Origin: Macrostomum lignano
Taxonomy: Eukaryota
Assembly: GCA_002269645.1 (NCBI GenBank)
Contig: NIVC01000471.1
Coordinates: forward strand, 239,215 to 303,214
Reading direction: 5' to 3'
Length of the DNA: 64,000 nucleotides
The translations under genes were made by a program, and so were the position numbers. The number at the start of each line of letters is the position of its first letter. Position 1 is the first letter of the stretch. The notes beneath the pieces were generated by a model. The model saw only the letters and a list, made by a program, of their open reading frames with translations, was not told where the DNA came from and did no database searches. Shown here in pieces: positions 6,851-33,440 of this stretch.

Positions 6851-7892
6851 ATGACAACTCTTGGAAAGTAAGCTGGCTTTTATTTTTTACTTTTTCACTT
6901 CGTTTTGCTCAGTTTCACCAGATTCTGCTAACCGATTTTTCACTCGGCTCTCATAAATGAGCGTTTTTGTTCGGACCTGTAGGCCCCATGACCAAGAGAA
7001 ACTGTTTGCGGCATCGCTGCATTAGGGCAGCCATTCAAGAATGCCATTGCGCTGAGTTGCCATGCAGTTTCTGTGTGGTTGCTATGCGGTTTCCATGCAG
7101 TTGCTATGCTGTTGCTATGCGGTTTCCATGCAGTTGCTATGCAGTTGCTGTGCGGTTGCTGTACCGTTACTATTCAGTTGCTATTCAGTTGCTATTCTGT
7201 TGCTATGCGGTTTCCATGCAGTTGCTATGCTGTTGCTATGCGCTTTCCATGGGGTTGCTATGTAGTTGCTATGCTTTTCCCATGCCGATGCTATATGCCA
7301 TTACCATGCAATTTCTACGCGGTTAATATACAGTTACTTTTCAGTTGTAATGCGGTTGCTATGCGGTTTCCATGCTATTTCAAACTTAATCTCGAACGCA
7401 TCGGTTCGCCACTCTACCCTGCTCAGGCCGCAGACAGTCCGCCTGGCCGCTCCGCTGGCTCTGCTCCTGCTGTACACCATCTGCTTTTGCGCCAAACCAA
7501 CGGCCGGTCTGCCAGCTTCCGCCAGCCTGATGGAGCGCCGAGCCAGCTACTGGCCGGGCATGTGGCAGTTCGACCGAAGCGACGGCGGCGGCTACGGGGA
7601 GCGCTACTACGACTACTACGGCGGGGCCAGGTACGCCAAGCGAGGCTACTACTGGCCGGGCATGTGGAACTTCGATCGCTACTACGACGAGAGCTCGCCA
7701 CTGGAGGGCAAGCGCGCCTACTACTGGCCTGGCATGTGGCGCTACCAGCAGCGCCGGCCGTCCAAGCGGTCCTACGGCTACGGCAACGACCATCCGTACT
7801 GGCTGGGCAAAGCCTGCGGCGAGACTGGCGACCCCGCCGCCTGCAGCATCCTGAACGGCCTGCACAACAACTATTATTACTACTATGATTGA
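6851..7892 (+). CDS. Secreted prohormone-like (neuropeptide precursor) protein, 160 aa, with three YWPGMW repeats
   Basis: Exons 6851-6867 (ATGACAACTCTTGGAAA|GTAAGC) and 7427-7892 (CTCAG|G) join in frame: MTTLGKPQTVRLAAPLALLLLYTICFCAKPTAG (signal peptide-like), then RR/KR-flanked peptides ASYWPGMW..., GYYWPGMW... and AYYWPGMW..., and a C-terminal ACGETGDPAAC two-Cys segment. GC-rich coding-like codon usage. Confidence 0.8.
6995..7375. repeat. Degenerate 10-11-bp repeat (GTTGCTATGC) in the intron; same family again at ~8085-8375
   Basis: Direct reading. It produces Cys/Tyr/Ala-rich pseudo-ORFs. Confidence 0.85.
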
Positions 7893-8717
7893 GCAGTTCT
7901 TGCTATCTTGGTTGGTTTCATCTTATAGACAAACCTTTTGGAGGCCGACAAGTTCTATGTATTGTATCGTGTGTCGTTTTCTCCGAATGTCATCAACCCC
8001 ACCAACACTAAACGGTTTTGTGCGTCTCTGAGCTTGGCGTTTCTATTTTAACGGCATGTTGCGGTAACAGCGAACTGTATCTGTACTGTCCCTATGCTGT
8101 TGCTATGCCGTTGCTAGGCTTTTGCCACCTAGATACTATAATTAATGTATTTGTCTTAGAATATTTGCTTTTGTCACTTAGCTATTGCAGCCTGTAGTAG
8201 CAGCACATACTCATACAATTGCTATGCTGTTGCTGTGCAGTTGCTATGCAGTTGCTATGCAGTTTCTAGGCAGTTTCTAGGCAGTTGCTACGCAGTTGTT
8301 TTGCAGTTTCTGTGCAGTTGCTATGCATTTGCTATGCCGTTGCTATGCTATTGCTATGCTGTTGCTATGCAGTCGATATATATCGTTTCTAGTCCATCTC
8401 AGCTGTTATTTTCCCATGTTTCTTTGAAGTCAGTGCGTTATTCCCCTGCAGGTATCGAAGCGATCAGGAAGATCAGGATTGATCAGTGATCAGGAGTGAT
8501 CAGTGATCAGGAAAATTTGATCAGGACAGACTGTTTTGTTAATCCTTAATCCTAACATTCGCGCATATTATCCTATATCCCACCCTGCGAGACTGCACTA
8601 CCCATGTAGACTCCTGTAATAACTGTTGGGTGTCTCATTATTCGGAAAGAAATATATACCACTCCATAAAATTCGAATTGTCAATATCCATTCATTTATT
8701 TATTTATTATAAATTTA

Positions 8718-9655
8718 GAGTGAAGTGTCGGAGATATGAAGTGTCGGAGATGTGAAGTGTCGGAGATATGAAGTGTCGGAGATATGAAGTGTCGGAGATG
8801 TGAAGTATCGGAGATATGAAGTGTCGGAGATGTGAAGTGTCGGAGATGTGAAATGTCGGAGATATGAAGTGTCGGAGATGTGAAGTGTCGGAGATGTGAA
8901 ATGTCGGAGATATGAAGTGTCGGAGATATGAAGTATCGGAGATATGAAGTGTCGGAGATGTGAAATGTCGGAGATATGAAGTGTCGGAGATGTGAAGTGT
9001 CGGAGATATGAAGTGTCGGAGATATGAAGTGTCGGAGATGTGAAGTATCGGAGATATGAAGTGTCGGAGATGTGAAGTGTCGGAGATGTGAAATGTCGGA
9101 GATATGAAGTGTCGGAGATATGAAATGTCGGAGATATGAAGTGTCGGAGATATGAAGTATCGGAGATATGAAGTGTCGGAGATGTGAAATGTCGGAGATA
9201 TGAAGTGTCGGAGATATGAAATGTCGGAGATATGAAGTGTCGGAGATATGAAGTATCGGAGATATGAAGTGTCGGAGATATGAAGTATCGGAGATATGAA
9301 GTGTCGGAGATATGAAGTGTCGGAGATATGAAGTGTCGGAGATGTGAAGTGTCGGAGATATGAAGTGTCGGAGATATGAAGTGTCGGAGATGTGAAGTGT
9401 CGGAGATAAGAAGTGTCGGAGATATGAAGTGTCGGAGATATGAAGTGTCGGAGATATGAAGTGTCGGAGATATGAAGTATCGGAGATATGAAGTGTCGGA
9501 GATGTGAAGTATCGGAGATATGAAGTGTCGGAGATGTGAAGTGTCGGAGATATGAAGTGTCGGAGATGTGAAGTATCGGAGATATGAAGTGTCGGAGATA
9601 TGAAGTGTCGGAGATATGAAGTGTCGGAGATATGAAGTGTCGGAGATGTGAAGTC
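8718..9655. repeat. 16-bp tandem minisatellite (GAAGTGTCGGAGATAT)
   Basis: Direct reading. The 337-aa ORF has a 16-aa period. Confidence 0.96.
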
Positions 9656-10491
9656 GCTTCTCACTTCATATCTTCGATGAGGATAGAAAAGATGAGACCC
9701 AGACTTCAAACCTCAGTATTTTCTCAGCAATTGTGCACTGGCTGTTATGTTTATTCTGTCGTCAAAAAATAAACATTCCACAAAAATAAACCTAAAGACG
9801 CAGTTCAGAGTGAGAGACGCACGCAAACCTTGGTGTTGATAGTCAGTTGTCTATTTTTACTCATGTGGAGGCGGGGGACTGTACCCGATCGGTCGTGTAC
9901 TGATGTTTTTACAGTCGGTCTGAGAATTTTTTGCCTCAAAACAAGCGCTTTTATAAGGCACCACCTGATGTCGTTTGAGACAGCAGAAAAACACAGGAAA
10001 TTCGTTTCAGCTTCTATTCAAAACGATGTTGACGATTTGTTTTTGCACCTGCGACCCAGCACGGGATGAAAGGCAATTATTTTGGAGTAAAAAATACCCC
10101 GGCTATCTCTGGTCCAGAAAAGTCGCACAGAGGTTGCTCAGCAGCCCTGACTTTCTCTCAATGACATGACACACATGATCTTCATCATCATGGATAGTCA
10201 CGAACTCAGCGCTAAACGCCTACGACTGGAACAGTGAGAATCAGAACCCTTGAGCACGGAGGACAGCTGCTAAAACGACTCGAGTACCTCTAATGGCAGA
10301 TGTTTGCAGAAAGGATTATATGCTCCTCTGGAAAGCATTTCCTTACTAATTAAGTCTAGCTGTTTCGATTGAGAGTGCCAGATGGTATTGCAGTGTTTTT
10401 GTATGTTTTTATAGCAGCCACTACGAGTATAAGCTGGCATGTAGTTGCATTGTGAATTTGACTGAATAATTTGGTTAACTTAATACTTAGG

Positions 10492-11166
10492 AGCTACAGA
10501 GGGGTGACAGCTACAGAGGGGTGACAGCTACAGAGGGGTGACAGCTACAGAGGGGTGACAGCTACAGAGGGGTGACAGCTACAGAGGGGTGACAGCTACA
10601 GAGGGGTGACAGCTACAGAGGGGTGACAGCTACAGAGGGGTGACAGCTACAGAGGGGTGACAGCTACAGAGGGGTGACAGCTACAGAGGGGTGACAGCTA
10701 CAGAGGGGTGACAGCTACAGAGGGGTGCCAGCTACAGAGGGGTGACAGCTACAGAGGGGTGACAGCTACAGAGGGGGCGACAGCTACAGAGGGGTGCCAG
10801 CTACAGAGGGGTGACAGCTACAGAGGGGTGACAGCTACAGAGGGGTGACAGCTACAGAGGGGTGCCAGCTACAGAGGGGTGCCAGCTACAGAGGGGGCGC
10901 CAGCTACAGAGGGGTGCCAGCTACAGAGGGGTGACAGCTACAGAGGGGGTGCCAGCTACAGAGGGGGGTGCCAGCAGGGGGGTGCCAGCTACAGAGGGGT
11001 GACAGCTACAGAGGGGTGACAGCTACAGAGGGGTGACAGCTACAGAGGGGTGACAGCTACAGAGGGGTGCCAGCTACAGAGGGGTGACAGCTACAGAGGG
11101 GTGACAGCTACAGAGGGGGCGACAGCTACAGAGGGGGCGCCAGCTATAGAGGGGTGACAGCTACAG
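10492..11166. repeat. 17-bp tandem minisatellite (CTACAGAGGGGTGACAG)
   Basis: Direct reading. Confidence 0.96.
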
Positions 11167-11777
11167 AGCAGCATGTGTCGTCATTGGTTTTGTGGCAGCG
11201 CACAGCTCATTCAATCCCAAAAAACATGTTCCACAAGTTTGATTTTCATATCGGTCCCAACCATGCAGAGGGTCTCTCGTTCTCCGCAATCGGCCCGAGA
11301 GAAATATTTCCAATCAAACTCGCCGCAGATATTGGATGAAGCTACCAGCATTTACTACCAGCACCTCTAAAGCCGCTGCCAGTGCCTAAACCCCAGGAGG
11401 CTGCGAAGTCAGTGAATCGAAACAATCTCGTGATGAAGACACGATTTTCTGGAATTGAGTGGCACTGGCGTGCTGCCAATCTGCTTTCAAATTCCATCAT
11501 AAATGCTGACTGCTACTCCCCTCTAATCTCCATTTCTTCCCCAATCTCTATAGTTTTCCCACGCGGACTTCTCCCAGAACGAACTGAAATTCCCAGAAGC
11601 TCAGAAATATTCTAAGAAAGGGATTTTCCTGTTCTGATTCTAAAATTTTCTTTTTGAACGAAATTTCCTACTGAAAGTAGAAGCTTAAAATTTATTTTTC
11701 ATTATTTTGAATCAGATAGCTCCTCGGCTGGGTCCATTAAAGATTTTTTAAAGCAGAATGACTGACATAAAACTACC

Positions 11778-11871
11778 GGATTGCAACAATATGACAACAC
11801 AATTGCAACAATATGACAACACAATTGCAACAATATGACAACACAATTGCAGCAATATGACAACACAATTG
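11778..11871. repeat. 22-bp minisatellite (GCAACAATATGACAACACAATT), left part; resumes at 16478-16643 after the retrotransposon
   Basis: The same unit occurs on both sides of the LTR element. Confidence 0.9.
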
Positions 11872-12044
11872 TGTAGTGTGCGTACGCACAGTATGGTACG
11901 CCCGGGCAGTCTGATTGGCTGCGGAGTGGGGTGGGTGCCGCCACCCCAATTCTAACTCCATAATATATAGACGCGTGCCCAGCGCGGCGAGATTTGTAAG
12001 AGTTTGGCTACACAGCAAACACGGCCTCTGACTCAGTTACTACA
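11872..12044 (+). repeat. 5' LTR
   Basis: TG...CA termini, matches 16305-16477, followed by the PBS. Confidence 0.97.
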
Positions 12045-12076
12045 ATGGCGTCGCAAGAACTGAACCTTTAAAAATC

Positions 12077-15000
12077 ATGACTCAGCAAATTTCACTCGCG
12101 CCACCCGGGCCGTTTACAATCGATAGCGACTGCCACTCCACAGCACAGCGCTGGACTGCATGGACTCGTCGCTTCGCCACGTACATCAATGCAGCTGGAA
12201 TCACCGACAAGACTCGAGGGCAGCAGCTGCTGCTGTACGCCGCAGGAGAGGAGCTGCAGGCTGTAGTCGAAGAGAACGAGATCGCCTCTGGAGAGGACTA
12301 CAGCAGCCTCGCGAAAACCATCCAGACGTTCTGGGACGGGAAGAATAACATTGTGTTCCTGCGTTTCAAGTTTGAGACCTGCAGACAGCAGCCTGGCGAG
12401 CAGATCGACCAGTGGTATCAGCGTCTGCGCAAGGCGGCGGAGCCGTGTGAGTTCGGGACCCTCAGAGACTCGCTGATCCGTGACAAAATCGTCGCCTACT
12501 GCGAATCTGAGAGACTCAGGAGAGACTTCTTGCAGACCAACAATATCTCCCTGGCAGATGTGCTCAAAAAGGCGAGGGCGAAAGAAGCCGCGGAGCAGCA
12601 GGCCACCGCGATGGAGAGCGACAGACCAGGGAACCGCAGCAGCTCGCAGCAGTCAGAAGAGACCAGAAGCCACAGATGCCGCAGACACCAACGCAGCACG
12701 TATCGTGCGATCGCTGCGGCAGGCCAGGGCACCCCACGTGCACCGCAGCGCAGGGCAAGAGCTGCAGAAAGTGCGGGAAGCCGGGCCACTTCGCGCGAGC
12801 CTGCAGGTCCAAGCAGGGCGCCCCGCAGAGCGGCGCCGACGCCGTCGCAACGCTGCAAGGCGAGACCAGCTACCAGAAGGTGGACCACCCGGACTCCGGC
12901 GTGTTCGAGGTCGATCAGGGTGAGCAGTCGGCCCACACAATAGCCGAGATCAACGGCTCCAGACTGTCGGTGTTGATCGACAGCGGTGCGGCTCGAAATG
13001 TGATCAACCGGGCCACGTTCGAGAGTCTGAGACAGCGGCCGCACCTGCAGACCACCTCGGACAGGCTGTTCGCGTACGGGTCGGACAGGCCGATGCAGCT
13101 GCTGGGCAAGGCGGCGATGGACGTCCGCATTTTCGGCCGGCAGGCAGTCGCCACGTTCCACGTCGTCGAAGGGAGAGGCATCACCATCATCGGCAGGCAG
13201 ACGGCCACTCAGATGGACATCCTGCGGGTCGGGCCACCACCGACAGCCGGACAGCAGGTGCTGCAGGTCGCTGAAGCGGAGGCGGCGGTCGATGGCCTTC
13301 TCAGCGGCACGAGATCCAGCGGAGTGCCTCAAGGACACGTCGAGGACATCGGCAGGGTGCTGCGCAAGCACGCCAGCGTGTTTAGCGGAGTCGGCTGCTT
13401 CACCGGGCCGCCTGCCGACATCCACCTCACCGACAGCGCCCGCCCAGTCTGCCATGCGCCTTCGAAGGTGCCGATCCACCTGGCAGACGCGGTGGTCAAG
13501 GAACTGCAGTTGTTAGAGCAGCTCGGGATCATTGAGCCCGTCGACGGCCCGGCGCCGTGGGTCGCGCAGATGGTCGTTGTGCCCAAGAAGGAGCCGGGCG
13601 AGGTGCGCATCACGCAGGACCTCCGCGATGTCAACCGCTTTGTCATCCGCGAGCGACACCAGATTCCGACTTTCGAGGAGGTGACCGGGGACATGGCTGG
13701 CAGCACTGTGTTCTCAGAGCTGGACATCGCGAAGGCGTTCTACCAGGTGCCTGTCGCCGAGAAATGCCGCAACCTGCTAACATTCTCGACGCCTCGCGGG
13801 CTTCGCCGTCTCACCCGGCTGTGCATGGGCCTGTCCACCTCCCAGGAGATCCTGCAGAATGTGATGAGTCGAGTGCTGGCAGGCCTGCCCAACGTCAAAT
13901 GGATCCACGACGACGTGGTCGTGTTCGGCCGCACGATGGCGGAGCACAACAGCAGCCTCGAGGCATGTCTGGCCCGCCTGGCGCAGCACGGCATCACGCT
14001 GAACGCTCGGAAATGCCGACTGGCGCGCAGCAGCATCGAGTTCATGGGAATGCGGCTCACGGCGGAAGGGGTCCAGGCCACGGAGAGCAAGGTCGCCGCC
14101 GTTCAAGACTTCAAGGAGCCCGAGTCGATTGGGCAGCTTCGCTCATTCCTGGGCCTCGTGAACTACCTCGCCGTGTTCACGCCACAGCTGGCCAAGGTGG
14201 CGGAGCCGCTGCGGCGCCTGACCAGGAAGACCGTCGACTGGCAGTGGGGCGCCGACCAGGCCAGCGCCTTTGAGCAGCTGAAGCGCAGCATCGCGGAGCC
14301 GACAACGCTGGCTTTTTACGACAAGCGGCTACACACGCAGCTGATTGTGGACGCGGGGCCGACCGGACTGGGCGCCATCCTGGCGCAGGTGCAGCGCGAC
14401 GGCAGCTCAAGGCCAGTCGCATACGCCAGCCGGACCCTGTCCGATGTCGAGCGGCGATATTCGCAGACCGAGAAAGAGGCACTCGCCGTGAAGTTCGGCT
14501 GCCTGAAGTTTGAGTACTACCTGCATGGATCGCCCCAGTTCACAGTGGTCTCTGATCACAAGCCGCTGACGGCCATGTTCGCGCCTGGGTCGCGGCCGCC
14601 TCCACGAGTCGAGCGAATGGCGCTGAGGATCCAGCACCTAGTGTTCAAGGTCGAGTATCAGCCGGGAGCCTCCAATGCTGCAGATGTACTCAGCAGGCAG
14701 CCCCTAAGCGAGCACGACGGAAGTTTTGGCGAGCAGCGGAGGGAGGCCTACATCAACGAGGTGGCGCAGGCGGCTGTGCCGATGGCGCTGACACTCCAAG
14801 ACATCCGCAAGAGCTCTGCCAGCGACCCAGTCATCCGGGCGGCGATAGCGGCGACGCAAGGCGGTCGGTGGGATTGCTCCAACCCCGAGATGCGCTCGCT
14901 CCACGCGCTGCGAGAGGAGCTGTCTGCGGTTGACGGGGTCCTCCTTCGACACCACCGAATCGTCGTGCCAGCTGATCTGCGGCAGCAGATGCTCGAATTA

Positions 15001-16079
15001 GCGCATCAAGGGCACCAGTGCTCGCAGAAGACGATCGCCAGACTCTGCACGAAGGTCTGGTGGCCGAGGATGGCAACTCAAGCGGAGGAATTCGTCAGTC
15101 GATGCCGCAGCTGCGCCGTCACGTCGCACACGCCAGCCGTCCGGGCCACGCCTCTGCAGCCGACGCCGATCCCGCGGGCGCCTGGCTGTCGATCGGCGCC
15201 GATTTCGTGGGACCCATCAACAACAACATGCTGCTGGTGTGCGTGGACCGCTACTCAAGGTTTCCGGAGGTGCAGCTCATGCAGACGACGACGGCCGAGG
15301 CATTGATTCCCCGCCTGCGAGAGATGTTCGCCCGTTTCGGGATCCCACAGGAGCTCGTGACAGATAATGGACCACCTTTCTCGTCCAAGGAGTTCGGCCG
15401 GTTCCTGGCGAGCTACGGGATCAAGCACCGCCTCATCACGCCCTACTACCCAGCGGCCAACGGCATGACAGAGCGACTGAACCGCTCCATCAACAAAGTC
15501 GTGCGAGCAGCCATCGAGGAGCGGCGGGACTGGAGGGCCGCTCTGGACGAGTGGCTGCTGGCCTACAGGAACACGCCGCACACGGCCACCGGGCGCGCAC
15601 CAGCCGAGCTGCTGATGGGCCGGCGGCCAAACGACATAATCCCCGCCGCCCGGCCGTCCCAGCGAGTCCGCATCAACGAGCAGCGGCTGAGAGAAGCCGA
15701 CGCTGGCGCCAAGGCGGCGATGAAGCAGCACGCGGACGCAAAAAGGCGACCACGGCGGCACGACGTCCAGGTCGGCGACTCGGTGCTACGACGGCGGGTC
15801 GGTGCCAGCAAGACGCAGACGCCATTCGAGAGCGGTGCCTGGACAGTCCAGCGGGTGGCCGGCAACTCGCTGCTGCTACGCCGGGACGGCACGACCTGCT
15901 GGCGGCACTGCACGGCGGTCAAAGTCGTCAGCCCCGACTTGGCCGACGCCGGCGCCCAGACGCAGACCGCTGCACCGAGAGCTTCGGGCGAGGCGGCCCG
16001 AGATCCACCCGCCTCCCCCGTGGCGCTGCGCCCGCACCCCCGCGCTGCTCGGGCGGGCGTGAAAATCTACAAGGACTGA
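12077..16079 (+). CDS. gag-pol polyprotein read across two -1 frame breaks (~12625-12640 and ~15170-15185)
   Basis: Gag N-terminus in ORF 12077. Zinc knuckle CRKCGKPGHFARAC, protease LIDSGA, RT ELDIAKAFYQ / IHDD, RNase H VDAGPTGLGA / YSQTEKEALA and integrase HH-CC are in ORF 12676. The integrase core (ADFVGP, TDNGPPF, NGMTERLN) is in ORF 15018. Confidence 0.93.
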
Positions 16080-16304
16080 ATTTGAAATCCTGCAATGACT
16101 GAAATTAACTGACTTTCTTTTCCGTAATATGCGGACTGAAGTTTTTTTACGTTTTTGCTGCATTCGATTCAAATATTTTATTTCCTTAATATTTTAATCT
16201 CCATTTTCAATGCGCATCATCGGTGAATCTTTCGAACTTTGTATTTTCGAGTTACGTTTAAATTGATTTTCTTCTCTCTCAGTCTCTATTCGAAAGGGGA
16301 GAGA

Positions 16305-16477
16305 TGTAGTGTGCGTACGCACAGTATGGTACGCCCGGGCAGTCTGATTGGCTGCGGAGTGGGGTGGGTGCCGCCACCCCAATTCTAACTCCATAATATA
16401 TAGACGCGTGCCCAGCGCGGCGAGATTTGTAAGAGTTTGGCTACACAGCAAACACGGCCTCTGACTCAGTTACTACA
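16305..16477 (+). repeat. 3' LTR
   Basis: Preceded by the PPT and followed by the TSD AATTG. Confidence 0.97.
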
Positions 16478-17209
16478 AATTGCAGCAATATGACAACACA
16501 ATTGCAGCAATATGACAACACGATTTCAGCAATATGACAACACGATTGCAATAATATGACGACACAATTGCAGCAACATGACAACACGATTGCAACAGTA
16601 TGACAACACAATTGCAGCAATATGACAATACAATTGCAACAATTCTGCGACTGACATTTTAGGTACTATTTAGATTGGATAAAATATTATGGATGATATT
16701 ATGTAGAGATCGAGACTACATTATTCTTTATGAATGGTTGAAGAGATGTATACATGTTGCTTTGTAGAATTATCAGTCTTTGTTTTAATAATTTGAGCGT
16801 CACCAGTTCTAAGCATCGCTGACCATTTTGGATTATGCCTGATTTTAAAGGGTTTTACCTAACGTACTACTATATATTGGATAGTAGTATAAAGTGAATG
16901 TACTCACCGAGGTTATTAACAGACCGAAGCTTAGATAATATACTGATTATATTTGTTTAAGGAGGCGATTTTCTAAATCCGATAGTACATTGGATTAGCA
17001 GATCTATAGGCTTGATAGATCTATATATCGATAAATCCAATTGATAATTTCTCAAAGGAGCTAAGATAAAATCCGGGTGCACTAGTTGATAACTCCACCA
17101 ATTCTGGTGGATAAATTGAGTGAAAATTATTGAGTAACTAAAAAACAAATCTGATTAGAGTTTGAGAGAGTATTGAAGTTAGCATGGTTAAAATGGTCAG
17201 ACTGGTGCT

Positions 17210-19601
17210 TCACCAGAAGTGACACTTGTCATTATCAGTCAGGTACATGGGGTCTCCCGGCTGGCATTTGAACACCCTGGCGAAGTCCTTCGACTGCATC
17301 ACCTGACCGTTCACTCTGGGATGCGGAGGCGAGTGACGCTTATCTTTGAATACAGAGATCAGGGTGTTCTTTTCCGCCTTTGTGCAGAGCAGCTGAGCAT
17401 TGTGGATGAAGAACAGCTGATCCGGTGTCAGCCCCGCCAGCTTCTCTCCTGGAATCAGCCGGGGCCGCCTCCCAGACTTTGCCGAACTGCTTCTGTAAGC
17501 TCGGAAGGCAGAATTGATGCCAACAATATCGGCAAAATTTTCGTTAAACTTCCGCACTCCTGCATTCATTGAATTGTCCCAAATGTCGGATTTTGCAAAC
17601 TCAGGATCGATGATCTGGTTGTAGAAATCTGCCAGACATTGAGATTGCTTGTCATACCGCAGCGCTGTGAGATTGTCAAATACACCTATCTGTTCCTCTC
17701 CAACGCTAATTTTTTTATTGCCTAATTTGTCAAAGGCGTGCCCGACCTCGTGGCCGACTGTGCCGCCGATGCCTCCGTACAGCAGGCAGTCGGGGTAGCC
17801 CTTCATGTAGACTTTGGTGAGCAGCAGGCCCAGGTAGATGAAGAGCGAATTCAGGTGTAGCGAGTAATGAGCGTTGACAGTAAAAATTCTTGAAAAAATG
17901 TCACTTGGCATCAAGTCCTGTTTGTCAGCTGTCAAAATCCAAAGTCGATTCTGAAGCTGAGTGCTTTTAAACTGCAAAACAACATCGCCAAATGTTCTGC
18001 TTTGGTTAACTTGAGCAGCAACTTTTGAGTAGCCTTCGGTGAACTCGGAAATGTTGAACTGGGGGTAGCCGACGGTGCTCCGAATGGCGTCGAGCTTCTT
18101 CTTAATTGCTGCCTTACTCGGCTGCTCAATCCACGCCTCGCTGTCCACATTCTCCCACATGGCCTCCTTGATGTCGCCGACTACCGCTTTCACTGAGTTG
18201 AAGTCATCTGTGACGAAGGCGCTGCTGAACATCTGCAAAGCCACTGGCGGCATGGAGCCCAACATCATGTCCATGCACAGTCTTGAGCTGTTCCGGCTTT
18301 CTTTCTCATGAATGAGATACTTTTGTTGCCCGAAAAGGTTTTTAAAGAATTTAAACGATTCGTCTGGAAGAAAATTGACTGCCGACAATGCAGAGTCCAT
18401 GCGAATAAAGTCGTAGTACGGTCCCTGTCTGTGCTCCAGCTCCGTTGTGAGCTGCTCGAGTACAAAAAATAATAGCGGGTACCTAATAATCTTGACTCTC
18501 ATTGAGGGAGGTAACTTATTGGCTGAATACTTATTCACAGCGCTGTAAAACTCCGTCCAGTTAAAGTTGAGATTATCTGCCTCAACCTGAGTAAAATTCT
18601 GCAGCTGTTCCAGAGAGTAAGGACCAACTTTCAAATACGATTCGCCTTTGTTTAACATTTGCTGAACTGCAGGCTTCATCTGATTTATACTAACAGTCAA
18701 ATTCAGGTCTATGAGATCACTGAAATCTTCTAATGCAGAAATTCCGTCATTGAAAACATGATTCCAGGATTTCAGGGTAGATAGGTAGTATGGTGACGAG
18801 TGCAATCTCAGACTCCGCTCCGCCGAGCCTGGCGACAATCTGAACAGATCCGATGTACCGGTTATTACCAGTCTCGCTAGGAAGTCTTCGATGCCTGAGT
18901 AGCCCTCTAGAAAGTCCAACAAAGGTCTCACTAATGATTTCATGTCGAAAGGTCGTTCTCCAGTCTGCCAGCTGTTCGGGAGAAATTCCTCTTTCTTAGA
19001 ATTCAGAACGCTGGAGCCGCGCCAATCCATGCAGGTCCCGTAGATGGATCGCAGAGTCTGGAACAGCTGCGCTTCGCTTGCGTCTCTGGGCTTGGACAAG
19101 TTCTTGAAGTACATCATCTCAAATAGATTTCCTTGAATGGAGTTGTCCTCCTGTAGTACTGAGCCCACGGTCTCGGCGGTGAAGGGGTGGGTTTTATGGA
19201 AACCGCCGCAGGCGAAGCTGTAGAAGTCTTGGCATGGGTCCGCAGATCGGTCGATGTGGCTCTGCAGCAGTGCGCTTGCACTTATGCAGGCCTCGCTGGT
19301 GCACAGGCTGGGATGCTTGGGAGTGGCTGCTCCAGGTGGTAACCGAGCTGTGCTGAGAGCGTAGAGCAGAACGAAAACTAGAAGCAGAATTGACAGAACC
19401 GCAATCAGCAAGAGCATCAGCAGGCGTCTTGCTCGATCAAGTCGAGTTGAAAACTCAACTCTGCCGCCATCGAGAATGCTCTGTTGAAAATTCAGCAATT
19501 TGAGGGTAGGGTTAATCCAGTTTGACTGTCTGACAGATGGAATTTCCCAATGAAAATGTTCTTACCATTGAAGTTGCCGCACTGCTACCAGCAGACATCA
19601 T
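17210..19601 (-). CDS. Neprilysin / endothelin-converting-enzyme-like M13 zinc metallopeptidase, ~768 aa, type II membrane protein
   Basis: Exons 19601-19566 (MMSAGSSAATSM|GTAAG) and 19480-17210 (TTTTCAACAG|), phase 0, 85-nt intron. N-terminal TM anchor, CTSEAC..DPCQDFYSFACG, VNAHY, HEVGH (HExxH), ENFAD, HSP and a C-terminal C..W are all M13 hallmarks. Confidence 0.95.
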
Positions 19602-23286: not shown

Positions 23287-23530
23287 GGGGCCGTAGCCCA
23301 GTGGTCTGGCGCGGCGATCTGATGCGCCAGCGGCCCAGGCTGGATTCCAAGTGCAGTCACATTTCGGGGCTGAATTGGAATCTCGGCTTGGCTCTGCTCG
23401 TGTAATTAACGGCCTTGAGGGCCAACCCCCAAGGGTCAATGTCGCTTAAAGTGACCCTGACTTCAGGACACTTGCCTGCGACATGCAACTCATTAAGATC
23501 CTTGTTGGAATATCGTAAACAATGGATACA
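23287..23530 (+). mobile_element. tRNA-derived SINE-like element (degenerate head)
   Basis: Starts GGGGCCG, A-box TAGCCCAGTGG (23294-23304), B-box-like GGCTGGATTCC (23338-23348). The acceptor stem does not pair. The 3' boundary is approximate. Confidence 0.4.
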
Positions 23531-23604
23531 ACAGCCATATTATTGAAGTAAATTTTGGAAATATAGTTCCTCTCCGACACGTGGAACGATGGTCTTGACA
23601 ATGT

Positions 23605-25094
23605 TCACCGCAGCCGGCAGTTCAGACAGCAGCGCCGCAGCTGCGACTTGAAATGAGGAATCGATAGCGAATAGATGACGAAATTCGCTACAGAATCGGC
23701 CGTGGTCAGCACGTTGGCGACGCCCATGAACATGTTGATGCCCGGCCATTCTAGATCTTTAATCGCCCCAGCAACCAGCAGAGGCAGCTCACAGATGACA
23801 AAGGCCGAGCAGAGTACCAGGACCGTGCGGTTCACCGACCTGACGAAAAGCAGACAGCGGTTTCAAAATTCTTAACTACGTCAGATGAGTAACAGAATGA
23901 AAGTGAATTTTAGAGTGTTGGTTTCTCTGTCAAATGTCAAATGTCAGATGTCAGATGTCAGATGTCAGATGTCAGATGTCAGAGAGTGTACATCCATGAC
24001 GATTGGAAAGTCAGGGTCGCTGTACACCCTATGTGAGCGTGTGTACAGTGTGTATTCAGGAGTTAGCGAAAAGGACAGAAGTGTCGTCAACCAGCCAGAT
24101 TTTACACCTACTTCTGGCCCAACAACGGAGAATAGTAGTCGACAGGTAAACCGCCAGTTCTGAAAAGTCGTTTCAATCTTATAACCAAATTTTGCGCTTA
24201 CCCAGCCTGCGCCTCTCGCTGCCGTCTCAGTCTGACGAAGAACGGAGCCGGGACATTCCTTAACAGCTGGCGGTCCGCCCGCTTCAGCTGGTACAGGGTG
24301 AGGCAGCTGACTACGAGAAGACAGAACACTGGGAGCAGCGAGTGCAGCGCAAAGAAGCACCTGGGGTAGATCCAGTAGGCAGCGGATGTGGCAAATGGGG
24401 CGGCCTTGATCGCTACAATCTTCTGAGTAGCCGGGCACATGGTGTACCTCACCTCCAGCGCCCGGGGCAGAGTCACCAGCAGCGACAGCCCAGCCAGAAG
24501 GCCGGATGCCTGGTTCACCGACCGGCTCGGCGGCGGGGACGTCATGAGGGTGCGTCCGCTGACGGCGCGCCACCTTCGCCAGGCGATGTGCACGATGAGC
24601 CAGTTGCGGGTCAGCGAGCTGGCCTTGTACACCAGCCAGAGCGGGTAGAGCATCAGCTTAGACAGCCAGCCGGGACCCGACGGGAGCCGGTGGCCGGCAG
24701 GCGGCGCGGTCAGCAGGTAGTACAGCTCGAACAGCAGCGCCGACAGACTGAGGACCACCTCGCAACCGGTGAGGTGCAGCAGCATCTGGGACAGGGCGCT
24801 GCAGGTGCATAAGTTACCTGTAGTTTCGTTACTAATCGAGTGGTTTAAGCTGCTGTTGCTGTGCCGGACATTTCTCTGGCGGTAGTGCCGATACCAGAAC
24901 ACGTAGAAGGACGCAGCGGAGACGACCAAAGCCAGCAGTGCCAGCCCTGCTTTGAACAGGTACAGCACGTCCGTGGCAGTCTGTTCGGGATTGGATCCGA
25001 ACCAAAACACCATCCTTGATGGCAATTCAAGATTTGAGCAGTTCTCAGCGAACCACAAGTCGCTGTCAGCTTCTACTTCCGTTGGAGTAGTCAT
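23605..25094 (-). CDS. Class A (rhodopsin-family) 7TM GPCR, FMRFamide-receptor/srw-like orphan, ~375 aa
   Basis: Exons 25094-24202 (GG|GTAAGC) and 23839-23605 (TTTTCGTCAG|G) join in phase. Seven hydrophobic segments. TM3 end RNWLIVHIAWRRWRAV, TM5 LHSLLP, TM6 FVICELP, TM7 DSVANFVIYSL, C-terminal FKSQLRRCC. Confidence 0.85.
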
Positions 25095-25459
25095 GTTGCC
25101 TGTGTTAGGTGAAGATTGGTTTTGGTCTGTGCCGAAAACACTCCTTCTGACGGTGGTTTCATGTTTCTAGGATTTCTATGCTAGTTAAGTCATTTCCCCA
25201 AAAAGCTGATTGGGTAGCGATAAGACACCCAATCTCCTAGGAAGCTGCTTTTGAAAGCTTTTCAACATTTTTTCAAACCCCTTCGATGGTAAAATGTTTT
25301 GCTAATGTATCGAGAAAACATTGACCTTCATTAACTAGCCGGAAAAAATTCACAAAATTTACTTGATTGCACACTCGGAAGTAATTACTCGTACTAAGGA
25401 TTAAGACTAATGGGTTTCCTGCTGCATCTGTAACATGAAGACATTCCCATTTAACACAC

Positions 25460-26072
25460 AGGTGACACTCATGGCTAACACACATATGACACTGCTGTCT
25501 AACAGGTGACACTCCTGTCTAACAGGTAAGACTCCTGTCTAACAGGTGACACTCCTGTCTAACAGGTAAGACTCCTGTCTAACAGGTGACACTCCTGTCT
25601 AACAGGTGACACTCCTGTATAACAGGCGACACTCCTGTCTAACAGATGACACTCCTGTCTAACAGGTGACACTCCTGTCTAACAGGTGACACTCATGTCT
25701 AACACACAGGTGACACTCATGTCTAACACACATGTGATATTCATGTCTAACACACAGGTGACACTGCTGTCTAACAGGTGACACTCCTGTCTAACAGGTG
25801 ACACTCCTGTCTAACAGGTGACACTCCTGTCTAACAGGTGACACTCCTGTCTAACAGGTGACACTCCTGTCTAACAGGTGACACTCCTGTCTAACAGGTG
25901 ACACTCCTGTCTAACAGGTGACACTCCTGTCTAACAGGTGACACTCCTGTCTAACACACAGGTGACACTCATGTCTAACAGGTGACACTCCTGTCTAACA
26001 GGTGACACTCCTGTCTAACACACAGGTGACACTCATGTCTAACAGGTGACACTCCTGTCTAACAGGTGACAT
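25460..26072. repeat. 20-bp tandem minisatellite (GTCTAACAGGTGACACTCCT)
   Basis: Direct reading. Confidence 0.95.
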
Positions 26073-27169: not shown

Positions 27170-28532
27170 GATCTTGTCAGTGTCACACAGGGTCAATTCT
27201 TAGTGTCACACTGGGATCTTGTCATGTCACACTGGGATCTTGTCATGTCACACTGGGATCTTGTTAGTGTCACACTGGGAACTTGTCATGTCACACTGGG
27301 ATCTTGTCATGTCACACTGGGATCTTGTTAGGGTCACACTGGGTCATTAGTGTCACACTGGGTCATTAGTGTCACACAGGGTCAATTCTTAGTGTCACAC
27401 TGGGAACTTGTCAGTGTCACACTGGGTCATTAGTGTCACACTGGGTCATTAGTGTCACACTGGGTCATTAGTGTCACACTGGGTCATTAGTGTCACACTG
27501 GGTCATTAGTGTCACACTGGGTCATTAGTGTCACACTGGGTCATTAGTGTCACACTGGGTCATTAGTGTCACACTGGGTCATTAGTGTCACACTGGGTCA
27601 TTAGTGTCACACTGGGTCATTAGTGTCACACTGGGTCATTAGTGTCACACTGGGTCATTAGTGTCACACTGGGTCATTAGTGTCACACTGGGTCATTAGT
27701 GTCACACTGGGTCATTAGTGTCACACTGGGTCATTAGTGTCACACTGGGTCATTAGTGTCACACTGGGTCATTAGTGTCACACTGGGTCATTAGTGTCAC
27801 ACTGGGTCATTAGTGTCACACTGGGTCATTAGTGTCACACTGGGTCATTAGTGTCACACTGGGTCATTAGTGTCACACTGGGTCATTAGTGTCACACTGG
27901 GTCATTAGTGTCACACTGGGTCATTAGTGTCACACTGGGTCATTAGTGTCACACTGGGTCATTAGTGTCACACTGGGTCATTAGTGTCACACTGGGTCAT
28001 TAGTGTCACACTGGGTCATTAGTGTCACACTGGGTCATTAGTGTCACACTGGGTCATTAGTGTCACACTGGGTCATTAGTGTCACACTGGGTCATTAGTG
28101 TCACACTGGGTCATTAGTGTCACACTGGGTCATTAGTGTCACACTGGGTCATTAGTGTCACACTGGGTCATTAGTGTCACACTGGGTCATTAGTGTCACA
28201 CTGGGATCTTGTCAGTGTCACACTGGGATCTTGTCACTGCCTCACTGGGATCTTATCAGTGTCACACTGGGATCTTGTCAGTGTCACACTGGGATCTTGT
28301 CAGTGTCACACTGGGATCTTGTCAGTGTCACACTGGGATCTTGTCAGTGTCACACTGGGATCTTGTCACTGCCTCACTGGGATCTTGTCAGTGCCTCACT
28401 GGGATCTTGTCAGTGTCACACTGGGATCTTGTCAGTGTCACACTGGGATCTTGTCAGTGTCACACTGGGATCTTGTCACTGCCTCACTGGGATCTTGTCA
28501 GTGCCTCACTGGGATCTTGTCAGTGTCACACT
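27170..28532. repeat. Compound minisatellite: 22-bp (GTGTCACACTGGGATCTTGTCA) flanks around a homogeneous 19-bp core (GTGTCACACTGGGTCATTA)
   Basis: The 19-mer array at about 27420-28200 is near perfect. 22-mers lie on both sides. Confidence 0.95.
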
Positions 28533-28974
28533 GGCTCACTGAACTGTATCTTGTCAATTCCCATCTACGTATCTGGTGAATATTTCAGGAGTTTCATTAT
28601 TGGGAAAATAATGATAGCCTAATGAAAAATAATTATCTTTTGATGAAACTTTCATTTAGATTATCTGGCGTGCGACATGCAGGTAAACAAGTCGAGACCT
28701 GACTTAAGGCTTGAATTATTCATTTTTTGACGCATTGATTGAACTCCTGCAGGTAAGGGTATTCGATGCTTGAGCAGAATCATAGATTCAAAGCTGAGTT
28801 CTCTTGGGACACTTGAAACAGCATAATTCATATTGATTCCGCCAGCTTGTAAGCTTGAGCTTCTTTGTCAGACTACTGATATAGCCTACTACTAGTAGTG
28901 CGCAAGGATTCACATTCAAGTTGTTTGTACTGTCCTGCCTGCATGCTTATCACTCATTCCGCATCACTCTTATC

Positions 28975-30210
28975 TGTCACTCAATCATTCCGTCACTCTA
29001 TCCTTGTGTCACTCTATCATTGTGTCACTATCATTGTGTCACTCTATCATTGTGTCACTCTATCATTGTGTCACTCTATCATTGTGTCACTATCATTGTG
29101 TCACTCTATCATAGTGTCACTCTATCATTGTGTCACTATCATTGTGTCACTCTATCATTGTGTCACTCTATCCTTGTGTCACTCTATCATTGTGTCACTC
29201 TATCATTGTGTCACTCTATCATTGTGTCACTATCATTGTGTCACTCTATCATAGTGTCACTCTATCATTGTGTCACTATCATTGTGTCACTCTATCATTG
29301 TGTCACTTTATCATGCTGTTACTCTATCATTGTGTCACTCTATCATGCTGTCACTCTATCATTCTGTCACTCAATCATTCTGTCACTCTGTCATTCCGTC
29401 ACTCTATCCTTGTGTCACTCTATCATTGTGTCACTCTATCATTGTGTCACTATCATTGTGTCACTTTATCATGCTGTCACTCTATCATTCTGTCACTCTA
29501 TCATTGTGTCACTCTATCATTGTGTCACTCTATCATTGTGTCACTCTATCATTGTGTCACTATCATTGTGTCACTCTATCATTGTGTCACTCTATCCTTG
29601 TGTCACTCTATCATTGTGTCACTCAATCATTCCGTCACTCTATCATTGTGTCTCTCTATCATTGTGTCACTCTATCATTGTGTCACTCTATCCTTGTGTC
29701 ACTCTATCATTGTGTCACTCTATCATAGTGTCACTCTATCATTGTGTCACTATCATTGTGTCACTCTATCATTGTGTCACTTTATCATGCTGTTACTCTA
29801 TCATTGTGTCACTCTATCATGCTGTCACTCTATCATTCTGTCACTCAATCATTCTGTCACTCTGTCATTCCGTCACTCTATCCTTGTGTCACTCTATCAT
29901 TGTGTCACTCTATCATTGTGTCACTATCATTGTGTCACTTTATCATGCTGTCACTCTATCATTCCGTCACTCTATCCTTGTGTCACTCTATCATTGTGTC
30001 ACTATCATTGTGTCACTCTATCATTGTGTCAATCTGTCATTGTGTCACTCTATCATTGTGTCAATCTGTCATTGTGTCACTCTATCATTCTGTCACTCAA
30101 TCATTGTGTCACTTTATCATGCTGTCACTCTATCATTGTGTCACTTTATCATGCTGTCACTCTATCATTGTGTCACTCTATCATTTTGTCACTCTGTCAT
30201 TCTGTCACTG
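28975..30210. repeat. 16-bp minisatellite (TGTCACTCTATCATTG) with 14-bp variants
   Basis: Direct reading. It is the source of the 379-437 aa pseudo-ORFs. Confidence 0.95.
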
Positions 30211-30462
30211 GGAATTTTCATTCCAGTGAGCTGAGGTGGGCCTGTGTGATTTCTCACATTCCAAAGTGATCCGCCGTCAGGAAATCCGATATGCTGCTGA
30301 GGCCTCGATTATTTTTGGTCTCGACTAACCAAAGCAGATTTTGGGACAGCGAGTCGATGGACTGAGCTATATCATAGGACGGAATGACCTGAGAATGGTG
30401 TAAACACATCCTGCTGTTGCTGCCTCTGTAGCATATTGATAGGAGGAAGTGCTTTGTCTAGT

Positions 30463-32113
30463 TGAGTCACTGGATGATGGAGTAACTGAATGATTGAGTC
30501 ACTAAAAGATTGAATCACTATATGATTAGGTAACTGAATTATTGAGTCTCTAGATGATTGAGTCACTGAATGATTAAGTCACTGAATGATTGAGTCACTG
30601 AATGATTGAGTCACTGAATAATTGAGTCACTGAATGATTGAGTCACTGAATGATTAAGTCACTGAATGATTGAGTCACTTCATTATTGAGTCACTGAATG
30701 ATTGAGTCACTTCATGATTGAGTCACTGAATGATTAAGTCACTGAAGGATTGATTCACTGAATGATTGATTCACTGAATGATTGAGTCACTGAATGATTG
30801 AGTCACTGAATGATTGAGTCACTGAATGATTGGAATGATTGAGTCACTGAATGATTGATTCACTGAATGATTAAGTCACTGAATAATTGAGTCACTGAAT
30901 GATTGAGTCACTGAATGATTAAGTCACTGAATGATTGAGTCACTTCATTATTGAGTCACTGAATGATTGAGTCACTTCATGATTGAGTCACTGAATGATT
31001 AAGTCACTGAAGGATTGATTCACTGAATGATTGAGTCACTAAAAGATTGAATCACTATATGATTAGGTAACTGAATTATTGAGTCTCTAGATGATTGAGT
31101 CACTGAATGATTAAGTCACTGAATGATTGAGTCACTGAATGATTGAGTCACTGAATAATTGAGTCACTGAATGATTGAGTCACTGAATGATTAAGTCACT
31201 GAATGATTGAGTCACTTCATTATTGAGTCACTGAATGATTGAGTCACTTCATGATTGAGTCACTGAATGATTAAGTCACTGAAGGATTGATTCACTGAAT
31301 GATTGATTCACTGAATGATTGAGTCACTGAATGATTGAGTCACTGAATGATTGAGTCACTGAATGATTGGAATGATTGAGTCACTGAATGATTGGAATGA
31401 TTGAGTCACTGAATGATTGATTCACTGAATGATTAAGTCACTGATTGATTAAGTCACTTAATGATTAAGTCACTGAATGATTGATTCACTGAATGATTGA
31501 TTCACTGAATGATTGAGTCACTGAATGATTGATTCACTGAATGATTGAGTCACTGAATGATTGAGTCACTGAATGATTGAGTCACTGAATGATTGATTCA
31601 CTGAATGATTGAGTCACTGAATGATTAATTCACTGAATGATTGATTCACTGAATGATTGAGTCACTGAATGATTGATTCACTGAATGATTGATTCACTGA
31701 ATGATTGAGTCACTGAATGATTGATTCACTGAATGATTGAGTCACTGAATGATTGAGTCACTGAATGATTGATTCACTGAATGATTGATTCACTGAATGA
31801 TTGAGTCACTGAATGATTAATTCACTGAATGATTGATTCACTGAATGATTGAGTCACTGAATGATTGAGTCACTGAATGATTGAGTCACTGAATGATTGA
31901 GTCACTGAATGATTGAGTCACTGAATGATTGATTCACTATATGATTAGGTAACTGAATGATTGATTCATTGATTGATTGAGTCACTGAATGATTGATTCA
32001 CTGAATGATTAATTCACTGAATGATTGAGTCACTGAATGATTGATTCACTGAATGATTGAGTCTCTAGATAATTGAGTCACTAAATGATTGAGTCACTGA
32101 ATGATTGAGTCAC
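30463..32113. repeat. 16-bp minisatellite (GAGTCACTGAATGATT)
   Basis: Direct reading, with an internal block duplication (about 30480-31020 repeated at about 31020-31400). Confidence 0.95.
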
Positions 32114-32455
32114 AAGATGGTTTTGCGGCTGAGGAACTGTGTAACTGAGTAAGTGAATGAGCGACTGAGTGACTTCCGCGGACCGATCAAGAGACCACAA
32201 TGCTGCATGAGACCTTCCTGCATGAGACCAGCAGCTGGAGGGCCTCCCCAGTAGAGTTGCTGGTGTCGCATTTTGATTCGCTGTCCCGTGCCTTCCTTAA
32301 TCCGCTGTCATCATCAGATCCACTGCAAATTTTCGGAGGCTGAATCGTCTATTTAGGAGGCCGACCTGAGATGCAGCAGGTCTTCGCCCGCCGCGCTGAA
32401 CCGAGAAAAATCGAAATCTACTTGAGAAACTTACAGATAAAGTACTGAAGCCGAC

Positions 32456-32560
32456 ATGACGCTACGAATCTTCTGCCTGCAGGTCAGTTATTTAGTTTGT
32501 TAGTTCGTTTGTTTGTTTGTTTGTTTGTTTGTTTGTTAGATAGTTACTTTAGTTAGTTAT

Positions 32561-32633
<73 letters not shown>

Positions 32634-33440
32634 CAGCTAGTTAGTTAGCTAGCCAGTTAGTTAGCTAGCCAGTTATTTAGTTAGTTAGCTAGCCAGTTAG
32701 TTAGCTAGCCAGTTAGTTAGCTAGCCAGTTAGTTAGCTAGCCAGTTAGTTAGCTAGCCAGTTAGTTAGCTAGCCAGTTATTTAGTTAGTTAGTCAGCTAG
32801 TTAGTTAGCTAGCCAGTTAGTTAGCTAGCCAGTTATTTAGTTAGTTAGCTAGCCAGTTAGTTAGCTAGCCAGTTAGTTAGCTAGCCAGTTATTTAGTTAG
32901 TTAGTCAGCTAGTTAGTTAGCTAGCCAGTTAGTTAGCTAGCCAGTTATTTAGTTAGTTAGCTAGCCAGTTAGTTAGCTAGCCAGTTATTTAGTTAGTTAG
33001 CTAGCCAGTTAGTTAGCTAGCCAGTTAGTTAGTTAGGTTGGTCACTGTGTGCTGTTTCACCCCTGCCGGGTCTTCAGGTACTTCTGGTGAGCCTGGTGGC
33101 ACTGTCGATGATGGCTCCATCGCATTGCTCAAGCGTCGACGAGCTGGAAGAAGACCAATCTGGAATCCGCCTGATCAGACCGCGGCATGCTTCGCTTGAC
33201 AAGCTGGAGCGGAGTCTGTACCGCCTGCTGCTGACTTCGCCGGAGCATCGGCAACAAGGTGGAGCCGCCACCGCCGCCGCCGCCAAGCAGCTCGCGGCCG
33301 CTCTGGCAGCTGAGGAGCCCGGAGAAGACGTGGTTCGAATTCGGTGAGGTTTTTATGACGAATTACAAGTATATTCGAGACGTTTGAAAAAACTAAATCA
33401 CCAATTTATAACAAAACTGGTTACTTTCAGATTCGGCTGA
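32456..33440 (+). CDS. RFamide neuropeptide precursor (divergent NPF/NPY-like), 100 aa, C-terminus ...EDVVRIRF-G-stop
   Basis: Exons 32456-32482 (MTLRIFCLQ|GTCAGT), 33078-33343 (CTTCAG|...ATTCG|GTGAGG) and 33431-33440 (TTTCAG|A TTC GGC TGA) are all in phase. Signal peptide MTLRIFCLQVLLVSLVALSMMAPSHCS, RxRF plus an amidation Gly, and a phase-2 intron in the Arg codon of RF. Confidence 0.82.
32490..33035. repeat. (GTTT/GTTA/GCTA)n microsatellite in intron 1 of the RFamide gene
   Basis: Direct reading. Confidence 0.95.

Follow-up and report, generated by a model that had tools for sequence, protein, structure and literature searches.

The analysed stretch comprises 64,000 nt of the genome of the flatworm Macrostomum lignano (assembly GCA_002269645.1, contig NIVC01000471.1, positions 239215-303214; hereafter the window) and forms the last 64 kb of this contig, up to the contig end. 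Four consecutive genes in the window share a theme of peptide signalling: a secreted precursor with YWPGMW repeats (Mlig013514), an M13 zinc metallopeptidase (Mlig009735), a G-protein-coupled receptor (GPCR) and a small precursor ending in RIRF-Gly, referred to below as the NPF-like gene. An earlier note on this DNA had pointed them out and proposed that they could be a co-regulated module of ligand, receptor and inactivator. All four were found to be real genes, i.e., two precursors, one M13 peptidase and one seven-transmembrane receptor. The interval that had been given for them, 6851-33440, is exact, since 6851 is the ATG of the YWPGMW precursor and 33440 the last base of the stop codon of the NPF-like gene. 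The GPCR gene (minus strand) and the NPF-like gene (plus strand) are indeed arranged head-to-head, with their ATGs at 25094 and 32456, and the spacer of 7,361 bp between them is filled with satellite DNA as described, four tandem arrays making up 4,742 bp (64%) of it. The YWPGMW precursor and M13 genes are 9.3 kb apart, with two satellites and a 4.6-kb long terminal repeat (LTR) retrotransposon in between, and the M13 and GPCR genes 4.0 kb. Among the four genes no further host gene was found, and the retrotransposon was the sole other coding element (Table 1). Based on the results of this study, the adjacency of the four genes is real, and it is best read as a neighbourhood rather than as a functional unit, at a probability of roughly 0.55.

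Table 1. Positions of the four genes and of other features in the window (nt, window coordinates)
Feature	Position	Strand	Basis
YWPGMW precursor, coding exon 1: MTTLGK, phase-2 donor GTAAGC	6851-6867	+	spliced product = Mlig013514g1
YWPGMW precursor, coding exon 2: remaining signal peptide, repeats, C-terminal tail	7427-7892	+	spliced product = Mlig013514g1
M13 (neprilysin/ECE-type) zinc metallopeptidase gene Mlig009735g1, 768 aa, PAA82423.1	17210-19601	-	Pfam, motifs
GPCR exon 1: N-terminus, transmembrane helices (TM) 1-5, intracellular loop (ICL) 3	24202-25094	-	GT/AG splice sites, relatives, AlphaFold2
GPCR exon 2: TM6, TM7 with NFVIY, helix 8, stop	23605-23839	-	GT/AG splice sites, relatives, AlphaFold2
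NPF-like gene exon 1: MTLRIFCLQ, donor GTCAGT	32456-32482	+	predicted splice model
NPF-like gene exon 2: remaining signal peptide, propeptide, ...VVRIR, donor GTGAGG	33078-33343	+	predicted splice model
NPF-like gene exon 3, 10 nt: A TTC GGC TGA (completes Arg, then Phe, Gly, stop)	33431-33440	+	predicted splice model
LTR retrotransposon (gag, protease, reverse transcriptase, RNase H, integrase) within 22-bp satellite	11872-16478	+	Pfam, LTRs
Tandem satellite array in GPCR/NPF-like spacer, 20-mer	25487-26071	.	repeat analysis
Tandem satellite array in GPCR/NPF-like spacer, 19-mer	27200-28469	.	repeat analysis
Tandem satellite array in GPCR/NPF-like spacer, 16-mer	28975-30209	.	repeat analysis
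Tandem satellite array in GPCR/NPF-like spacer, 16-mer	30462-32113	.	repeat analysis
Kelch-repeat protein gene	35908-37306	-	Pfam, housekeeping-type
ASF1 histone chaperone gene, split by satellite-containing intron	43814-45165	+	Pfam
ALKBH-like 2OG-Fe(II) oxygenase gene	50000-50752	+	Pfam
Gpi1/PIG-Q gene	51919-54074	+	Pfam
hSac2-domain protein gene	58261-58725	-	Pfam

The spliced model of the YWPGMW precursor, 160 aa in length, was 100% identical to the annotated protein BOX15_Mlig013514g1. It begins with a signal peptide and contains the motif [A/G][S/Y]YWPGMW three times, with RR or KR immediately before each copy. Five dibasic sites are present, and a single Gly-Lys-Arg site predicts an amidated end, ...SSPLE-NH2. 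Behind the repeats lie a PYWL-Gly-Lys site and a tail with the spacing Cys-x8-Cys and the end YYYYYD, and 22 of the last 127 residues are Tyr. In the processing proposed here, the signal peptide would be removed, prohormone convertases would cut at the five dibasic sites, and three peptides starting with [A/G][S/Y]YWPGMW would be set free, one of them amidated at ...SSPLE-NH2; the candidate peptides predicted are GYYWPGMWNFDRYYDESSPLE-NH2, AYYWPGMWRYQQ and SYGYGNDHPYWL-NH2. When a chimeric query combining this precursor and the NPF-like one was searched against 5.8 billion proteins, the YWPGMW precursor found only itself. The motifs YWPG, PGMW and YYW did not occur in the planarian prohormone supplement, and a literature search on the motifs VRIRF, RIRFamide and WPGMW and on the Mlig genes gave nothing relevant. 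The best explanation of the gene is a lineage-restricted secreted precursor with a prohormone-like architecture, from which we infer a neuropeptide role. Membership in the luqin, elevenin, MIP/Wamide or orcokinin/pedal-peptide families was considered and rejected on the basis of motifs: the precursor lacks an RF, RW or RYamide, its Trp is not amidated, and its Cys spacing is 8, whereas that of luqin precursors is 10. A TATAAAT element and a CCAAT box lie ~100 bp upstream of the ATG, and the intron of the gene carries an 11-bp tandem array.

The NPF-like gene is unannotated. Its predicted three exons encode a precursor of 100 aa with the end ...VVRIRFG-stop and a signal peptide, MTLRIFCLQVLLVSLVALSMMAPSHC..., to which exons 1 and 2 both contribute and which was judged by eye. 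The frame used in exon 2 had the best codon-usage score. In the predicted splice the last Arg codon is split CG/A between 33343 and 33431, with the donor GTGAGG and the acceptor TTTCAG; by our own estimate, chance would place an acceptor with F/Y-Gly-stop or F/Y-Gly-dibasic behind it in a span of a few hundred bases in ~0.5% of cases. In vertebrate NPY genes and planarian npy genes alike, a conserved intron interrupts the Arg codon before the aromatic residue (PMC2953531), and RxRF-amide is given as the C-terminal motif of NPF in PMC6389622. Because of its RxRF-Gly end and the intron inside the Arg codon, the gene is assigned by architecture to the NPY/NPF type, as a divergent prohormone. As in Smed-npy-1 to -11 of the planarian Schmidtea mediterranea (PMC2953531), the precursor is small, begins with a signal peptide and yields a single C-terminal peptide, RxRF-Gly is present and an intron splits the Arg codon; as in Smed-npy-7, the stop follows directly after Gly. 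However, compared with Smed-npy-3 to -8, the flatworm NPY/NPF end (G/A)RPRF/Y is replaced by RIRF and the upstream Tyr/Leu pattern is missing, no Tyr being present in the last 30 positions. The distance from the signal peptide to the amide is also longer, ~74 residues as against ~30-40 in most of the family and 59 in npy-7, and the precursor differs from the flatworm npy family in its Ala-rich middle and in having no dibasic site, i.e., no basic pair upstream of the single RFG.

The term RFamide precursor used in the earlier note needs correction, the architecture of the gene being of the NPY/NPF type. An FMRFamide-like (FLP) multi-copy precursor was ruled out, as there is one RFG at the extreme C-terminus without a flanking dibasic pair, in contrast to Smed-spp-11 with YIRFG three times between KR sites. 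No homologues of the NPF-like precursor were detected with the chimeric query, in which low-complexity words possibly crowded out distant ones, and the open reading frame (ORF) of exon 2 had no exact match among the database proteins. After cleavage of the signal peptide, the C-terminal Gly would be converted to an amide and a long peptide ending in VVRIRFamide would be released. By analogy with the planarian pair NPY-8/NPYR-1, this peptide would be expected to signal through a canonical NPY-type receptor whose gene lies elsewhere. Two further observations concern this gene. An upstream ORF of 25 codons, MQQVFARRAEPRKIEIYLRNLQIKY-stop (window 32371-32448, plus strand), ends 7 nt before the ATG, and its first 12 nt are part of a 12-mer common to the upstream regions of the GPCR and NPF-like genes. 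The first intron consists in part of an (AGTT)n array.

The GPCR gene comprises two exons, encodes 375 aa and was not called by the NCBI annotation in either of the two copies examined. The protein had no Pfam match at E<=10, 7tm_1 and Srw included, gave no match in a word-indexed search of the protein database, where the ORF of exon 1 was also without an exact match, and as a single sequence had no match among PDB chains at E<=10. When 1.84 billion representatives were scanned in full with HMMER, 33 relatives were retrieved, the nearest being PAA76711.1 of M. lignano (45% identity). The 7tm_1 domain was matched by 29 of these 33 relatives, weakly by the closest ones. When the eight closest were scanned singly, seven matched only 7tm_1 or Srx and one, a fragment, had a sub-threshold Srw match (E=0.004); Srw matches were found in nine of the 33. 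With the alignment of the relatives, AlphaFold2 produced a model with a predicted local distance difference test score (pLDDT) of 86 and a predicted template-modelling score (pTM) of 0.87, showing seven helices, helix 8 and a beta-hairpin in extracellular loop (ECL) 2; the single-sequence model was poor (pLDDT 46) and was not used. The top PDB matches of the model in Foldseek were OX2R, SSTR2, MOR, GALR1, ETB and NTSR1, almost all of them peptide receptors, at a probability of 1.00 and a TM-score of up to 0.79 (normalised to the target), and the family profile matched class A receptors in the PDB with E=6e-36. Solved NPY receptors are present in the PDB, and none appeared among the top 60 profile matches or the top 50 fold matches.

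The class A motifs are degenerate in this receptor, with LTGCE for LAxxD, RRW for DRY, CELP for CWxP and NFVIY for NPxxY. The family alignment shows hardly any variation at P255, P317, N350 and Y354, which would correspond to positions 5.50, 6.50, 7.49 and 7.53. Judged from its relatives and the predicted model, the gene is a real, divergent class A orphan receptor, with a predicted fold closest to peptide receptors, and the label "peptide-type" is plausible. The further description as FMRFamide-receptor-like could not be upheld: there is no Srw match and the closest relatives are mostly of the 7tm_1/Srx kind, in a comparison made via profiles only. By any of the sequence- and model-based tests run, the receptor is neither FMRFamide-receptor/Srw-like nor NPY-receptor-like. 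The species-named relatives all come from M. lignano, Protopolystoma or Cichlidogyrus, and many of the others are ENA or Logan contigs; judged from the species-named members, the family is provisionally regarded as flatworm-restricted.

Flatworms are rich in receptors of this kind. In S. mediterranea 461 of the 566 GPCRs are rhodopsin-like, most of them in divergent flatworm families, and several rhodopsin-like groups, i.e., PROF1/Srfb, Srfa/c, Rho-L/R and fwRhods, are restricted to flatworms (PMC3261222, PMC4862687, PMC6114109). Like the PROF1, Srf and Rho-L/R orphans, the present receptor is highly diverged, escapes Pfam, was missed by gene predictors and has peptide-receptor-like features. 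It further resembles PROF1 (PMC3261222, Table 3), by motifs only, in [L][S/T]..E in TM2 and N-F-x-x-Y in TM7. On the other hand, its gene is interrupted by one intron, a difference from the intronless PROF1 genes (PMC3261222), TM3 has RRW/RRY and not D[R/K][C/M], and TM6 has F...E.P and not [F/Y]...[S/A].[P/L]. Compared with the closest paralogue, ~25 extra residues are present in ICL1 (residues ~69-95; window 24815-24890, minus strand). They have low AlphaFold2 confidence (block means 61-64) and include three N-x-S/T sequons (NSS, NHS and NET), which would be unusual for the cytoplasmic side. A 20-nt "intron", GTAACT...CTGCAG, in exon 1 was rejected as too short, and the extra residues were kept as coding.

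The identification of the fourth gene as an M13 peptidase was confirmed by Pfam matches to Peptidase_M13_N (1.4e-22) and Peptidase_M13 (8.1e-39). The motifs of the family are intact, with HEVGH at ORF residue 583 (HExxH), NENFAD at 653 (ENxAD) and a C-terminal CHFW (CxxW), and the product has an N-terminal type II membrane anchor. In the combination of this anchor, the M13_N and M13 domains and all three motifs it resembles neprilysin and endothelin-converting enzyme (ECE; MEROPS M13), and by these features it is a catalytically competent neprilysin/ECE-type ectoenzyme. The name "endothelin-converting enzyme 1" given to its close relatives in UniRef presumably results from automatic annotation and is uninformative on the substrate. 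The ORF at 17210-19498 (minus strand) was 94-99% identical to M. lignano proteins, and the DNA at the locus of PAA82423.1 was 100% identical to window 7210-29601.

The assembly contains the locus three times, in collinear order, on contigs NIVC01000471.1, NIVC01000513.1 and NIVC01000157.1. An identical 160-aa YWPGMW protein and an M13 gene were found on all three, and the GPCR was also present on NIVC01000513.1; it was compared in these two copies, the third having been read short of the GPCR position. The NPF-like gene was seen in the window only, as the comparison with NIVC01000513.1 ends in a 16-bp satellite ~0.4-1.4 kb short of the expected site. Coding identity between the copies was 98-99.7%. 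The second copy of the GPCR retains an intact ORF, with four substitutions (two synonymous and two non-synonymous) and no indels in 1128 nt (0.35%), and its flanks showed ~1.3% substitutions and 49 indel columns. Synonymous divergence (dS) between copies was 0.007-0.04, i.e., the copies are too similar for an informative ratio of non-synonymous to synonymous divergence (dN/dS). Neopolyploidy is described for M. lignano in PMC12896417, and the copies are consistent with recent duplicates of that origin. Because they are recent duplicates, the gene order they share says nothing on selection for linkage. In addition, no M13, NPF-like or YWPGMW sequence was found within 10 kb of either the 45%-identical GPCR paralogue of M. 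lignano or a monogenean relative of the receptor, which is weak negative evidence on linkage given uncertain orthology. One peculiarity of the second copy is a 1-bp indel in the M13 gene at about coding nt 1703 (equivalent to window ~17796), which causes a frameshift before the catalytic domain; this copy is annotated as a truncated protein of 597 aa with the M13_N domain only. The frameshift could reflect either a decaying duplicate or an indel error of long reads.

How often such genes would come together under random gene order was estimated from 566 GPCRs, of which 461 are rhodopsin-like, as in S. mediterranea, an assumed M13 share of ~0.15% and a total of ~25,000 genes; for prohormone genes, a survey by Collins in 2010 reportedly counted ~51 in S. 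mediterranea. The estimate is post hoc and rough, and it presupposes that the labels of neuropeptide, neuropeptide-degrading M13 and peptide receptor are correct. With these inputs, ~2 adjacent precursor-GPCR pairs, ~0.01 runs of four genes from the precursor, GPCR and M13 classes, and ~4e-5 runs of the exact composition (two precursors, one M13 and one GPCR) would be expected per genome. With 461 rhodopsin-like GPCRs, chance alone should put a GPCR beside a precursor gene a few times in every genome, and the pair taken alone is therefore unremarkable. The four-gene run, at ~0.01 to 4e-5 per genome, is nominally rare.

The proposal of the earlier note, as elaborated here, would be that the GPCR binds the RIRFamide and/or YWPGMW peptides, that the M13 peptidase ends the signal, and that linkage holds co-adapted alleles of ligand, receptor and terminator, or their shared regulation, together. 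The peptide-receptor-like predicted fold with its ECL2 hairpin, the divergent and lineage-restricted nature of both ligand and receptor, the head-to-head arrangement of the GPCR and NPF-like genes, the apparently intact catalytic motifs of the M13 peptidase and the nominal rarity of the run would all agree with it. However, the ligand and the receptor do not match in family, the former being NPF-type and the neighbouring GPCR not NPYR-type. Flatworm NPY-family peptides use canonical NPY receptors, to which this GPCR has no specific similarity; in planarians NPY-8, the only deorphanised NPY-family peptide there, acts on the canonical NPY receptor NPYR-1. In this pair, the one studied in flatworms, the two partners are also in different cells, as the ligand was seen in 0 of 30 npyr-1-positive cells and the receptor in 0 of 30 ligand-positive cells. 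Moreover, the linkage is seen only in near-identical duplicates, relatives of the GPCR elsewhere have no such neighbours, the genes are 4-9 kb apart, the satellite-filled spacer of 7.4 kb between the GPCR and NPF-like genes is not a shared or bidirectional promoter, and the GPCR, M13 and prohormone families are large. The module reading thus gained no support from the comparisons made, is indirectly disfavoured, and we consider it distinctly improbable. The same small probability is given to a lineage-specific peptidergic cassette in which NPF-derived RIRFamide and/or YWPGMW peptides co-evolved with the adjacent orphan GPCR, with M13 as the inactivator.

A neighbourhood without a joint function is itself opposed by several points. 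Four consecutive genes fit one theme while the next five, encoding Kelch-repeat, ASF1, ALKBH-like, Gpi1/PIG-Q and hSac2-domain proteins according to Pfam, do not, which nominally corresponds to ~1e-2 to 4e-5 per genome. An orphan GPCR with a predicted fold of the peptide-receptor type could possibly have an unconventional ligand, and the GPCR and the NPF-like ligand are both unusually divergent, as lineage-specific co-evolution would produce. A further case of a peptide-processing gene next to a GPCR gene is hinted at by A0A1I8I1N8, an M. lignano entry that is probably two adjacent genes merged by a predictor. Alternatively, the four genes could lie in a common chromatin or regulatory domain that is active in neurosecretory or other secretory cells, with a receptor that binds neither of the encoded peptides and a peptidase without any special relation to them. 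An uninterrupted themed run of four followed by unrelated housekeeping genes, TATA-like promoters at both precursor genes and the nominal rarity of the run under random gene order (own estimate) would agree with this. However, YWPGMW and M13 are annotated while the GPCR and NPF-like genes are not, which may reflect very different transcript levels; the spacers are filled with satellites and one has received a fresh retroelement; and there is no convincing common promoter motif. Such a co-expressed group is on balance unlikely. It could further be argued that, in a genome that became polyploid recently, the GPCR gene, the NPF-like gene or both are duplicates in decay or ORFs without expression, since both are absent from the NCBI annotation and from the database of 5.8 billion proteins, the NPF-like peptide has neither the Pro of RPRF nor the Tyr/Leu positions that flatworm NPFs conserve, the receptor has RRW for DRY and CELP for CWxP, and the indel in one M13 copy shows that there is either decay among the copies or indel error in the assembly. 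Against this, the GPCR ORF is intact in two copies without indels and its exons have far fewer substitutions than the flanks, the residues conserved in its family are kept, the AlphaFold2 model is confident, and the NPF-like gene retains a signal peptide, canonical splice sites, the split Arg codon exactly as in NPY genes and a micro-exon encoding F-G-stop, a combination that by our estimate chance would yield in less than ~1% of cases. Partial loss of function is therefore very unlikely, and the reading of the locus as a real neighbourhood of four genes without a joint function is preferred.

Basidiomycete pheromone/receptor (P/R) mating-type loci are the best-known case of linkage between peptide-precursor and GPCR genes. 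If the module were true, they would be its parallel, as peptide-precursor genes lie there beside a GPCR gene (bioRxiv 10.1101/626911), and the cassette would be an animal counterpart of the fungal loci. The P/R loci differ, however, in being fungal, with Ste3-type receptors, lipopeptide pheromones, a linkage conserved across species and a role in mating compatibility. If linkage really marks the ligand, the locus would offer a cheap route to deorphanisation and a rare animal example of ligand-receptor gene linkage. If it is coincidental, it provides a useful caution that themed neighbourhoods turn up readily where GPCR families are very large. In either case, two unannotated genes, an NPY/NPF-type prohormone by architecture that ends in RIRFamide and a putatively flatworm-restricted orphan class A GPCR, are added to the catalogue of M. 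lignano, together with a proposed processing model for Mlig013514, a secreted precursor that is itself an orphan. Interest in flatworm-specific GPCRs, almost all of which are orphans, comes from their potential as anthelmintic targets.

Several observations concern the surroundings of the four genes. A scan of the window for more amidated-peptide or peptide-precursor-like ORFs gave none that was credible, and the ALKBH-like ORF had no exact match among the database proteins. When the upstream regions of the four genes were compared, one common 12-mer only, AGATGCAGCAGG (NPF-like and GPCR genes), was found and was not convincing. The entry A0A1I8I1N8 mentioned above has 1360 aa, with a subtilisin/kexin-type proprotein convertase (S8 and P domain, 91-536) joined to a 7tm_1 GPCR (995-1189), and its GPCR part is distantly related to the receptor in the window (E=2.4e-4). 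The four arrays in the spacer between the GPCR and NPF-like genes are mutually unrelated, and similar arrays occur all over the window and are thus not specific to this spacer. The window contains ~25 distinct tandem arrays in introns and intergenic DNA, with unrelated units of 4-122 bp (mostly 10-50 bp); several are 1-1.7 kb long, and many yield long spurious ORFs. The retrotransposon between the YWPGMW precursor and M13 genes has LTRs of 174 bp (11872-12045 and 16305-16478) that are 100% identical, its stretch has no counterpart in the NIVC01000513.1 copy, and the spacing of the two genes is ~5 kb shorter in the third copy. Because of these three findings, its insertion is, as judged from the sequences compared, very recent. 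The integrase ORF of the element (15018-16079) is out of frame with the ORF for reverse transcriptase and RNase H (12676-15306), with an overlap of ~290 nt.

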